Source: Octopus sinensis | Taxonomy: Eukaryota | Length of the DNA stretch: 64,000 nucleotides | Reading direction: 5' to 3' | Assembly (NCBI RefSeq): GCF_006345805.1 | Contig: NC_043005.1 | Coordinates: 1,612,001 to 1,676,000 of the forward strand | Shown here: one piece after another, positions 41,100 to 50,169 of the stretch | Numbering within the stretch: the first letter of the stretch is position 1 | How the letters are laid out: each line of letters opens with the position of its first letter | The notes under the pieces: generated by a model | What the model saw: only the letters and a program-made list of their open reading frames with translations | Told to the model about the DNA's origin: nothing | Database searches by the model: none | Position numbers and translations under genes: made by a program

Positions 41100-41676
41100 G
41101 CTTTTACTTGTGAATTGAGTCCCTAAAAGATTTGCATTCCTTTAACCTTCTGGCAACCTTTTTGCACTTCTGGCAGTGAATTCTGGCTGTCAAGATGCTT
41201 GTAAATGCTTTCTGAAAGCAATCTTGCTAACAGCTTCCACCCTAATGGTAAGAAAGTGATTGGGCTATAATTACTGGCTGTATTACCCTTGCTTTTGTCT
41301 TTCATAATGAGTATTGCCCTCCCTCAAGTCATCAAATCTGGTATTATTCCTCCATTAAGACAATCCTGAAGTCGATCCCTCAGCCTCCCATGTGAACTAA
41401 TAAATTTCTTTAGCTAGTACCCTTGAACTAAATCTACTTCTGGGCCCTCCCAATTCAGCATTTTCCATAACACTTTACTCATTAAAGTACTAGTTAATCT
41501 TAAATCTGGTCGCTTCTCATTCACCATCTCCAGTACTTTCTCCTCTGGTCTCTCTCAAATAATCTATTCTGTTGATACTGATCTATTCTTTTCTGTTATC
41601 TGGAAAGCTAACCTGCAACGGCTATGATACGCTGTTTCAACTCTCCCATGACTGTCCTAAATTTTATCTCTTTGAC
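41100..41676 (-). mobile_element. R4/Dong RT fragment
   Basis: KDKSKGNTASNYSPITFLPLGWKLL...LPEVQKGC; 5' end abuts a TAA tract. Confidence 0.75.
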
Positions 41677-41718
41677 TATTATTATTATTATTATTATTAT
41701 TATTATTAGTATTATTAT

Positions 41719-42114
41719 ATGACATAAACTCTCAGCCTATTTTGCTGGGTATGATGGAGAGTGTCAGCTGTCCACAGCCAGCAGACTAAGGTGACATTTG
41801 TTTACTGGTCAGGCTTCAAGAATCCTGCAAAGAATTCTTGCAGTTCCAAGCAATGCTGATTCTTGTAGGTGTTCTACCTTCACGCTTGCGCCAATCTTTT
41901 TTATCCATGTTGGTCCACTGGGCTGCTCCAATAGTAACAATCCATAACCATCATGTTTACCTGTTTACTCCACTTATGTCTTGTAGCATGGTTAACAGTT
42001 GCTGGATTATGACCAGGCCCACCCTGCTGCACAGAGGGGCAACTGCCACATGTGACACCTTCACCATTGGTTCCAGTCCTGTTCACACCATTATCATCAT
42101 CTATTTTGCTTGGC
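41719..42114 (-). mobile_element. Internally deleted R4/Dong derivative (N-terminus fused to C-terminus and 3' UTR)
   Basis: MPSKIDDDNG...RHKWSKQVNMMVMDCYYWSSPVD joined within about 10 nt to WIKKIGASVKVEHLQESALLGTARILCRILEA*. Confidence 0.7.
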
Positions 42115-42220
42115 ATAATAATAATAATATAATAATAATAATAATAATAATAATAATAATAATTATTATTATTATTATTATTATTATTATTATTATTATT
42201 ATTATTATTATTATTATTAT

Positions 42221-43340
42221 TCTATGTTTGACTTTTGCTTTATATTTGTACAAGTTGGCTCCAAGTCTCACCCAGAGACCTCAAGAGACAACAGGTTGGA
42301 AGTTCACGTTGTTGTTATGCCTAGTGTGCCATATATTTGGTTGTTTTTTTTCTTTTGGTGTTGTACTAGTGGATATCTAAAAAAAAAAAATTATGTTTGT
42401 TTTAAACCTTGAGATTACATAGAAAGTATTTTGCGTAGGATATGAGCAGTTCCCATGAGCACTATCTTTTGAATTTCTGCCATTTTGGGGTTTGGGTATC
42501 TGAGTTAGGTAGCAATCAGCCCCTTTCGCTATCATTCCCAGGGCACCTATGACAACAGGTATTGTTTTAGTTTTCAGGTTCCACATTTTGCTGATTTCTA
42601 TTTCAAGATCTTTATATTTGCTCAGTTCATGGTAGGTCTTGACAGTTACGTTTATATCGATTGGGATTGTCATATCAATGAGGAGGCATGTTCTTTGTCT
42701 GAAGTCTTTCAATATGATGCCTGGCCTATTTGCATCTATCTTTCCGTCAGTTTGAATGGTGAAGTTCCAGAGGAGTGAGATGTGGTCATTTTGAAGCACT
42801 GGAGGTGGTTTGTGTTCCCATCAGTTTTTTTCATGGGGCAAATCCAGGTTTTTGCAGATTACCCAGTGAATATATTGTGCAGCTCCATCATGCCTGTTGA
42901 GATACTCTGTAGGCGCTAGAAGACTGCACTTGGAGACAACATGATCAATGGTTTCATTTTGTTGTTGACATACACGACATGTTGGGCTACTGCCGTTCTT
43001 TAATATGTTGGCCCGGTAGTTTCTTGTTGGTAGGGATTGATCTTGAGCTGCTATGATAAACCCTTCTGTTTCAGATTTTAAGCCAGAGGCCATTAGCCAT
43101 TGATGGGTCAGGGCTTTGTCAACATCTGCATTATTCGCTCTCTTTGGGTATTTGCCATAGAGAGGTTTTTCTTGCCATTTATCATTCAGAATATCTAAGG
43201 CCGCAGTTTTGGCACGTGTTTTCATGTGCTTAGCTTTTTCTGTGCTTGTTTCTTGTATGTCAATCTCTAATTCCGAAATTGGTTGTATTCGGAATTCACT
43301 TAGATATTCCTTTGCCTGTTTTGTTACTGAGTATGATGTT
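42221..43340 (-). mobile_element. 5'-truncated R4/Dong LINE, family B (zinc knuckle and RLE)
   Basis: KPLYGKY, SETEGFIIAAQDQSL, CRVCQQQNETIDHVVSKC, RPGIILKD..CLLIDMTIP, PVVIGALG; ends in (TAA)n. Confidence 0.9.
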
Positions 43341-43457
43341 TTCTTCTTCTTCTTCTTCTTCTTCTTCTTCTTCTTCTTCTTCTTCTTCTTATTATTATTA
43401 TTATTATTATTATTATTATTATTATTATTATTATTATTATTATTATTATTATTATTA

Positions 43458-47697: not shown

Positions 47698-47918
47698 TCA
47701 GTAGTTTTATTTTTATAGCGTGCTTTCACTTCACTACCGAGCGCAGCTCTGTATGCCTTGGGTATGTGCTGTGATTTGTTGTGATGCTCTGATGGTTATT
47801 GTATGGAAAGTGTTCTGCGTAGGATTTGTGCAATGCCTAGTAGTGCAATTTTCTGTATGTTAAATGTGTTTGTAAATCCTGGTGTTTTTGTTACGTATTT
47901 TTTACGTATTTGTTACGT
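47698..47918 (-). mobile_element. ~220-bp 3' end of another R4/Dong family (D)
   Basis: KYVTKTPGFTNTFNIQKIALLGIAQILRRTLSIQ*, then UTR and (TAA)n. Confidence 0.8.
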
Positions 47919-47949
47919 ATTATTATTATTATTATTATTATTATTATTA

Positions 47950-49074
47950 CTTTTTTTTTCTTCTTTCAGATTTCCTTCCATTTCTTGCCGAGTGTCTTCC
48001 CGACTCCTAGGGCAAAGAAACTCATAGTGTATATTGGTAGGCCATTAAACCAAACTCAGTAGTTCGTTCATTTTTTTTTTTTTTTTTTAAGTTAAATTAA
48101 AATACATGAGCAGCAACAGTTCTCACATCGACAATGCTCTTCTCAATACGTGTGATGTACCAGTTAAGACAATCTTTTGCACTTCTTGCAGGGATGGTAA
48201 GCCAGGGATCATTCTCATATAATTTTCGGTTCCCTTCTTGATCATTCCTAGTGCTCCTACGATCACTGGTATTGTAACCGCCTTGAGATGCTACATTTTC
48301 TCAATTTCAATGAGTAGGTCTTTATATTTTCTGAGCTTGTCAAACTCTTTCGCTGAGATATTATGATCACAGGGGATGCTCATGTCGATCAATAAGCAAA
48401 CTTTATTGTTTTGGTCTTTCACAACAATATCTGGTTTATTGGCCTTGATGGTTCAGTCTGTATGTACTGGAAAGTCCCACAGAATGGTTACATTTTCTCC
48501 TTCAGTTACGGCCTCAGGGTGGTGATTATACCACTTGTCGGCAGTTTTGATATTGTAATGCCGACTTATTAGCCAGTGGAGATATTGGCCAACTCTGTCA
48601 TGTCTTAATTTATACTCCACTGGTGCTAAGACTTTACATCCAGAGATTAGGTGGTCCACTGTTTCAATCATGTCGTTGCAGAATCGGCATTTTGGGTCTG
48701 CTCCATTTTTGATCACATTGGCCTGGTAGTTCCGGGTTAATAGGCTTTGGTCTTGAGCAGCCAGGATGAAACCTTCGCTCTCTGCTTTTAGCCCTGAGCT
48801 CCATAGCCACTGATGGGTTTGCTTCTGGTCAACATCAGCTTGTTTGCTGCGGGTCACATATTTGCCGTGCAGAGGTTTCTCCTCCCACCTATCAGCCAAT
48901 TGCTCGTGCCCTTTTTTCATTGCCATCATTTTCACCTTCTTTGCAACAATAGTTGCTGTACTTCCCTCGGGTTGTTCAGTTTGGGTATCCTGCACGAGAT
49001 CAATAGCAAATTTTTTGCTTTCCTTGATGATAGAATGAAGCTTCTTTCGTCTCTCGTGATTTTCCACGAGCTTT
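47950..49074 (-). mobile_element. 5'-truncated family C copy 2
   Basis: About a dozen differences from 43458-44578 by eye; truncated at taaagctcg, abutting (TAA)n. Confidence 0.95.
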
Positions 49075-49223
49075 ATTATTATTATTATTTATTATTATTA
49101 TTATTATTATTATCATTATTATTATTATTATTATTATTATTATTATTATTATTATTATTATTATCATTATTATTATTATTATTATTATTATTATTATCAT
49201 CATTATTATTATTATTATTATTA

Positions 49224-49675
49224 CTTTTTTTTTTCTTCTTTCAAATTTGCTTCCATTTCTTGCCGAGTGTCTTCCCGACTCCTAGGGCAAAGAAACTCAT
49301 AGTATACATTGGTAGGCCATTAAACCAAACTCAATAGTTCGTTCATTTTTAAAAAAAAATTTTTTTTTAAGTTATATTAAAATACATGAGCAGCAACAGT
49401 TCTCACATCGACAATGCTCTTCTCAATACGTGTGATGTACCAGTTAAGACAATCTTTTGCACTTCTTGCAGGGATGGTAAGCCAGGGATCATTCTCATAT
49501 AATTTTTGGTTCCCTTCTTGATCATTCCTAGTGCTCCTACGATCACTGGTATTGTAACCGCCTTGAGATGCCACATTTTCTCAATTTCAATGAGTAGGTC
49601 TTTATATTTTCTGAGCTTGTCAAACTCTTTCGCTGAGATATTATGATCACAGGGGATGCTCATGTCGATCAATAA
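49224..49675 (-). mobile_element. 5'-truncated family C copy 3
   Basis: Same 3' end as copies 1 and 2; IDMSIPCDH...EKMWHLKAVTIPVIVGALG...RRALSM*. Confidence 0.95.
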
Positions 49676-50169
49676 TTATTATAATTATTATTATTATTAT
49701 TATTATTATTATTATTATTATTATTATTATTATTATTATTATTATTATTATTATTATTATTATTATTATTATTATTATTATTATTATTATTATTATTATT
49801 ATTAGCATTATTATTGTTATTGATGCTGTTTCCCTTGGGCTTTGCAATATTTGGCAACATTTTTGTGGATAAAACATAGCTCAAAACACTTCAGTCTGAT
49901 AGATAAAAGAAGCAATTTTTTTTCCTGCCAGTTTAAGAAGACTTTGTGAATGATAAGTGCCAAACGTTTTGCCGAACAATTATATTAAGAATGAATAGAA
50001 ATAAGGTCTCAGGGGAACACATTAAATATCTGTTTATTTAGAGATTAATAAAGTAATTGGTAGAGAGGTTTAGTGCAAAATAGGGAAGTGTGTGGCCCAG
50101 AGAGCACAACGCTTCTCTACATTTTCTTTCATTAGCCACAAAGACCCATACATACCATACAAATCAAGT

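Follow-up and report, generated by a model that had tools for sequence, protein, structure and literature searches.

A TAA microsatellite of Octopus sinensis occupied by a co-oriented stack of Dong-like retrotransposon pieces

Dong elements are site-specific long interspersed nuclear elements (LINEs) known for their association with TAA microsatellites. According to PMC3812793, which cites Kojima and Fujiwara 2004 as well as Xiong and Eickbush 1993, (TAA)n is the target of Dong in Bombyx mori, DongAg in Anopheles gambiae and DongBg in Biomphalaria glabrata. The R4/Dong group has been described as carrying a single open reading frame (ORF) without N-terminal zinc fingers, with a CCHC motif and a restriction-like endonuclease (RLE), and with a conserved helical N-terminal domain, divergent and Myb/SANT-like, that contains two invariant Trp residues (PMC7998251). 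As to octopuses and their relatives, the repeat library of Octopus bimaculoides contains a Dong with a full-length ORF (PMC9115989), Dong-R4 is one of the LINE families abundant in cephalopods (PMC8967140), and O. vulgaris has 1129 near-full-length Dong-R4 insertions from 5 families that were active recently (PMC13282606). Here, we analyzed a 64,000-nt stretch of Octopus sinensis DNA (contig NC_043005.1, positions 1,612,001 to 1,676,000; hereafter the window, within which all positions are numbered), focusing on seven LINE pieces stacked between positions 41100 and 49822. Overall, we consider it very probable that this locus is a (TAA)n microsatellite that was hit repeatedly by Dong-type (R4-clade-like) non-LTR (non-long terminal repeat) retrotransposons belonging to at least five lineages. 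An initial annotation of the window had treated TAA targeting as established for insect Dong elements; this is indeed published, but not for insects only, since molluscs and cnidarians are covered as well (PMC3812793, PMC7998251).

The layout of the stack was determined by direct reading of positions 40600-50400, with Tandem Repeats Finder and by reading the junction sequences one by one, while coding remnants were located with a profile hidden Markov model built from 47 relatives and with tblastn, using the read-through translation of the long copy (C1) as query. Both searches placed all seven pieces on the minus strand, the sense in which the features of the stack are described below. Sense-strand TAA lies directly at the 3' end in 6/6 visible cases (A2, B, C1, D, C2 and C3). 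Tandem Repeats Finder reported plus-strand TTA-type tracts at 41677-41718, 42162-42221, 43389-43457, 47562-47698, 47918-47949, 49073-49223 and 49675-49821, and, likewise on the plus strand, pure (TTC)n at 43341-43390 and a single, inverted TAA-type tract at 42115-42163. A one-stranded stack of seven pieces with every visible 3' end running into sense TAA had already been proposed in the initial annotation and was recovered here, A1 having no visible 3' end. Contrary to the further claim that only pure microsatellite parts the pieces, a 138-nt non-TAA stretch and a (GAA)16 tract also stand between them; the sense-strand TAA tracts are 91-100% pure by Tandem Repeats Finder and direct reading. 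Across the window, the TAA strand is the sense strand for 9/9 Dong-like pieces located by TAA tracts, so that matching polarity by chance is unlikely.

Reading the stack by increasing coordinate, A1 (41100-41676) is a Dong-like fragment cut at both ends and spanning the region before the reverse transcriptase (RT) together with the first RT motifs; its profile match covers 41147-41595 (profile 370-564, E 9e-13) and it is 33-37% identical to relatives. Sequence on its left had looked AP-endonuclease-like when ORFs were judged by eye, a candidate that was dropped for lack of a Pfam match and is now recorded as unidentified transposable-element debris. The 5' end of A1 adjoins (TAA)14 (41677-41718, 98% TAA), which is the 3' tail or flank of A2. 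A2 itself (41719-42114) is 5'-truncated and internally deleted, joining N-terminal codons ~24-89 to the last ~32 codons, with weak, collinear profile matches at 41922-42017 (profile 56-89, E 0.039) and 41815-41910 (profile 1181-1212, E 0.0035). Despite its internal deletion it retains its own stop codon, 3' untranslated region (UTR) and TAA tail, and it could be a short non-autonomous derivative that arose through the deletion. At its 5' junction, Tandem Repeats Finder and direct junction reading agree on an inverted tract (42115-42161), (TTA)16 in the sense orientation, which together with the adjoining pure (TAA)20 (42162-42220, 100% TAA) after the 3' end of B forms a (TAA)n/(TTA)n palindrome, as initially annotated. 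B (42221-43340) is a 5'-truncated member of a second lineage with linker, CCHC motif, RLE, C-terminal tail and 3'UTR (profile matches within 42418-43357, profile 903-1213, E 7e-66 and 5e-48). Its 5' junction is occupied by a pure (GAA)16 tract (43341-43388), which is followed by the pure (TAA)23 (43389-43457) that stands after the 3' end of C1.

C1 (43458-47423) has a complete but decayed coding region, encompassing the helical N-terminal domain, RT, CCHC motif and RLE, and a 3'UTR; its profile match (43632-47289) spans profile positions 4-1213. On its 5' side, junction reading revealed 138 nt of non-TAA sequence (47424-47561), made of 34 unique nt and a (GAT/GGT)n tract, which may be a piece of the C1 5'UTR or unrelated sequence. 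C1 had been annotated as full-length at 43458-47561; completeness of the coding region stands, but its true 5' end may be at 47423, a boundary judged from the sole available copy with a complete coding region. Next comes (TAA)45 (47562-47697, 98% TAA) after the 3' end of D, a 221-bp 3' end of another lineage (47698-47918) that retains the last ~30 codons and a 3'UTR (profile match 47802-47903, profile 1180-1213, E 6e-6). Pure (TAA)10 (47919-47949) separates it from C2 (47950-49074), a 5'-truncated, 1125-bp C copy matching the profile at 48126-49079 (profile 897-1213), after whose 5' end (TAA)~50 with GAT interruptions (49075-49223, 91% TAA) stands at the 3' end of C3. The last piece, C3 (49224-49675), is a 5'-truncated C copy of 452 bp (profile match 49406-49675, profile 1124-1213). 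Upstream of it, (TAA)~49 (49676-49821) has no element beyond and is the outer remnant of the target tract.

The protein encoded by these pieces is that of an RLE-type LINE, as had been annotated. In C1 a single ORF region (47313-43632) runs for ~1238 codons with ~10 frameshifts or stops. Pfam recognized RVT_1 in its read-through protein (residues 537-800, E 6e-29) and gave no match to an AP endonuclease domain (Exo_endo_phos). The sole relatives among PDB entries are R2 retrotransposon proteins (E 3e-29 with the single sequence, 7e-51 with the profile), with which C1 stays collinear along the RT, the CCHC motif and the RLE with its PD..D..K core; the CRxC..H..C and the PD, D and K columns are invariant across 47 relatives. 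A single ORF of ~1200 amino acids is indicated by the collinearity of C1 with profile positions 4-1213 and by relatives coding for 1190-1260 amino acids on ~4-kb contigs. In the N-terminal ~330 alignment columns of the 47 relatives, no Cys or His is conserved and W80 and W112 are invariant, and residues 82-162 form a four-helix domain predicted with confidence by AlphaFold. Foldseek returned no PDB fold match for the N-terminal domain at E<=0.001, and a sub-threshold Pfam match to a glycosyl hydrolase in this region was discarded as spurious. The annotation of several sequence families was likewise well founded: identity between B and C is 51% at the protein and 67% at the DNA level, that between D and C is 38-41%, and A1 and A2 are each distinct again. 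Judged by this divergence, the TAA stack is shared by at least five lineages.

How do these elements compare with described systems? Like Dong, DongAg and DongBg, they are single-ORF LINEs with an RT and a C-terminal CCHC motif and RLE, and their 3' ends are joined to TAA; they represent different lineages, the comparison being one of descriptions and not of sequences. The Dong-R4 elements of Octopus bimaculoides and O. vulgaris, also likened by description and not by consensus, very probably belong to the same families as those in the window. R2 provides the nearest solved structures and offers a parallel in its target-primed reverse transcription, which is specific for site and orientation and enters a target that is itself tandemly repeated. 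In contrast, identity to R2 is only ~25%, R2 possesses N-terminal zinc fingers and a Myb domain and targets 28S ribosomal DNA (rDNA), whereas alignment of the window elements to R2 chains begins only at about residue 330-370 and their flanks are TAA repeats. Membership of the R2 clade was therefore ruled out by the TAA flanks, the missing N-terminal homology and the absence of conserved N-terminal Cys/His. R4 of nematodes, which the literature places in one clade with Dong, has the same domain order but targets 28S rDNA and not a microsatellite. Among AP endonuclease (APE)-type elements, Waldo, Mino, Kibi and Koshi are similarly associated with simple repeats, but with other repeats and by means of an AP endonuclease. 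In I elements TAA is present just as a tail, and they encode an AP endonuclease, unlike the window elements, which are without an APE domain; membership of the APE-type I clade was rejected since C1 has no N-terminal AP endonuclease and its endonuclease is C-terminal and RLE-type.

We then turned to relatives from other sources. Identity to database proteins was 67% at most in one large protein search and 82% at most across two, and the relatives returned were all unnamed or 'uncharacterized'. Metagenome contigs gave no match when scanned with a single sequence, and a profile scan, which found distant relatives only, yielded 80 related loci, whose flanks, where informative, were scored for at least 4 TAA or TTA repeats. 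Downstream, sense TAA was found at 17 and TTA at 1 of the 36 informative loci; upstream, 17 of 31 informative flanks carried sense TAA and 3 carried TTA. One contig (L001) ends in (TAA)33 after the 3'UTR. L002, a 2.8-Mb contig from a different organism, carries on one strand the succession of TAA, a truncated element, TAA, a second truncated element, TAA and a full-length element, and co-oriented pairs also occur at L015 and L069. At L057 two elements lie in opposite orientation, and for both of them the TAA repeats are on the sense strand. A 76-element RT tree has TAA-flanked members throughout, and C1 is nested among them (support 99). The sequence- and orientation-specific link to TAA proposed in the initial annotation is thus family-wide and concerns both flanks. 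Rare relatives have other repeats downstream, L021 a telomere-like (CCCTAA)n, L025 a (CT)17 tract and L032 an (ATT)n of opposite polarity, and these may reflect target switches within the group. Between the two opposed Dong-like elements of L057 (positions 4165-4283 of that locus) there is an inverted (TTA)10 ... (TAA)9 pair, an analogue in another organism of window positions 42115-42220. Four relatives (L062, L069, L060 and L034) start right after (TAA)n with a common G-rich motif (..CAATGGGTA..) followed by a GC-rich leader of 300-450 nt. This motif is missing from C1, and the C1 5'UTR may therefore be incomplete or lineage-specific.

The three C copies, initially annotated as independent insertions and not tandem duplicates, are 97-99% identical (pairwise alignment: C1/C2 98.7%, C1/C3 98.2%, C2/C3 97.1%), and the repeat finder likewise recognized a single element present in three copies. 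This similarity, and the fact that TAA tracts could mediate unequal recombination, would suit duplication, whether segmental or in tandem, or an unequal exchange involving the tracts. Yet their 5' ends differ, C2 (1125 bp) and C3 (452 bp) being truncated at separate points whereas C1 retains its complete coding region; D, a member of a different lineage, sits between C1 and C2; all variable sites in the three-way overlap are private to one copy; and the frameshifts of C1 are missing from C2. One Trp codon, moreover, reads TGG in C3 (~49571-49573), TGA in C1 (43797-43799) and TAG in C2 (48291-48293). On these grounds we conclude that C1, C2 and C3 were each retrotransposed separately from a source that had been active recently, and we regard duplication as extremely improbable. 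The two stops at this codon amount to two independent G-to-A changes, an anecdotal observation, and the substitution spectrum among the C copies is unremarkable overall. Long microsatellites and near-identical repeats are also hard to assemble, and the stack or its C copies could in principle be an artefact of this repeat-rich and microsatellite-rich region; the copies are however unlike in length and 1.3-2.9% divergent, and a like architecture is found on the 2.8-Mb contig L002 and on further contigs, which leaves an artefact with only a slight chance of being correct.

Similarly, the TAA tracts might be nothing but the elements' own 3' tails, with integration not specific to TAA and the stack a product of chance nesting. 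There are LINEs whose ends carry TAA repeats although TAA is not their target (PMC3747384), and inside the stack any upstream tract could be a neighbor's tail. The (TAA)~49 on the 5' side of C3, the upstream-most piece, cannot be read in this way because no element lies beyond it, so that TAA stands on both sides of insertions and is not merely a tail. The 17 of 31 informative upstream flanks with sense TAA among relatives, the occupation in matching polarity of three of three TAA loci in the window and the missing AP endonuclease domain all point away from tails alone, which we consider very unlikely. It is also improbable, if somewhat less so, that the elements, as RLE LINEs specific for TAA, lie outside the named R4/Dong clade and converged on the same target. 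Such an origin draws on a tree that holds no named Dong or R4 sequence and on the missing Myb-like and ribozyme matches; it sits poorly with the single ORF, the lack of N-terminal zinc fingers, the two invariant Trp in a conserved helical N-terminal domain and the CCHC and RLE combination, all of which match PMC7998251, with the presence among the relatives of cnidarian and crustacean proteins such as are listed there, and with the over one thousand young Dong-R4 copies reported from octopus genomes (PMC13282606).

Repeated insertion of Dong-type elements thus remains the favored explanation of the stack, and several observations weigh against it. The R4/Dong assignment is suggested by architecture and target and not by a tree with named Dong, R4, NeSL and Utopia sequences. 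No Pfam Myb match marks the N-terminal domain as Myb/SANT. The 3' end of A1 is not visible, there being no profile signal left of 41147 and only unrelated debris. Simple target-primed reverse transcription does not account for the loss in A1, the (GAA)16 tract, the inverted tract or the 138-nt stretch. Exact-protein look-ups of two window ORFs returned no match, and no further copies from the same genome were obtained. Finally, neither the window nor any of 12 relatives gave an Rfam match to a hepatitis delta virus (HDV)-like ribozyme at E<=1. HDV-like ribozymes are hard to detect by sequence. An alignment fold of the relatives' 5' ends (n = 6) gave no consensus pairs, and the fold of the 110-nt leader of C1 reached only z = -3.3. 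In Dong of B. mori, a 5' HDV-like self-cleaving ribozyme frees the element from co-transcripts by cutting at the TAA/element junction (PMC3774820).

By analogy with R2 and Dong biology, the stack may have formed as follows. The element's endonuclease would nick the TTA strand of the repeat, and the (UAA)n 3' tail of its RNA would pair with that strand and prime reverse transcription. Given that the target is polar, every insertion would take one orientation, and it is from this polarity that the co-orientation of the pieces would follow in the proposed mechanism. Incomplete reverse transcription would leave 5'-truncated copies, which would join upstream sequence at short TAA-like microhomologies; the 5' joint of C2 lies at an internal TAA of the element and is compatible with microhomology-mediated joining. 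Insertion would split the tract and leave TAA on both sides, so that the site could be targeted again and a head-to-tail stack could grow. It is plausible that TAA tracts are re-used and extended in this manner as a self-renewing landing pad. We hold a broader version to be rather doubtful, in which TAA microsatellites are largely built and lengthened by Dong insertion, with lineages sharing pads and with aberrant 5' resolution as an additional contribution. Each insertion may add a fresh pure (TAA)n tail, and several competing Dong lineages may share and enlarge the same landing pads. The pure tracts directly 3' of B, C1 and C2 measure 10-23 repeats; tract purity beside 3' ends was tried as an indicator of fresh tails, showed an inconsistent pattern and was not used as evidence. 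At the odd 5' junctions, (GAA)16 may have been added at the 5' end of B, and a fold-back template switch at the upstream end, which would yield just such a structure, can be put forward, speculatively, as the source of the (TAA)20/(TTA)16 palindrome at A2.

The stack is a real and neat, yet ordinary, instance of a known family of site-specific LINEs. The inference drawn in the initial annotation, an octopus lineage of sequence- and orientation-specific LINEs that repeatedly re-uses and extends TAA tracts, is correct in substance but not new, because both Dong targeting of TAA and the abundance of Dong-R4 in octopuses have been published. The octopus papers concern copy numbers and activity, and a term search of their text (PMC9115989, PMC13282606) gave no passage on stacking in TAA; potential novelty is limited to tract growth by insertion and to the odd 5' junctions, if followed genome-wide. 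The locus is a compact record of how site-specific retrotransposons use a polar microsatellite: all pieces lie on one strand, TAA stands at every visible 3' end, the copies are truncated to graded degrees from the 5' side, and one target is shared by several lineages. It can serve as a teaching or annotation example and opens no new question. Dong copies are likely to interrupt the long TAA tracts of such genomes, a point that bears on assembly and on microsatellite genotyping.

Two further Dong-like pieces lie beside TAA tracts elsewhere in the window. On the minus strand, F (13356-14568) belongs to a further Dong-like lineage, of which it retains the 5' ~1.2 kb. Its 5' end adjoins a TAA tract at 14569-14636, which it reaches via a (TAAA/TAGA)n-like stretch, and a 3' truncation ends it at ~13350, beside an (ATG)n-type tract. 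On the plus strand, the G locus (52954-55190) consists of a 1.35-kb imperfect (TAA)n tract followed by G (54305-55190), a decayed, 5'-truncated Dong-like element with an RLE region at 54461-54769 and the same polarity as in the stack. The tract before G holds many GAT/ATA variants, and G ends near a degenerate AATAACAGTAACAACAACA stretch.

Other repeats in the window are of different kinds. Next to the TAA tract of F, a 558-bp interspersed repeat (14637-15194) has plus-strand TTA tracts on both sides and is not Dong-like by profile; a second copy, 75% identical, occurs at 25614-26142 without TAA flanks. A divergent RLE-LINE-like RT fragment on the minus strand (5661-6995), 35-42% identical to the Dong-like panel, is also without TAA flanks and forms a long branch in the RT tree, joining L025, the relative flanked by (CT)17. 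A long ACAT/ATGT-type array at 34650-35420 yields 'HTYI' pseudo-ORFs. Finally, a 138-bp repeat in 1.8 copies (38947-39197) and a 61-bp repeat in 2.4 copies (52636-52784) have the motif 'GGCAC(A/G)TAAAAG(A/C)ACC' in common.

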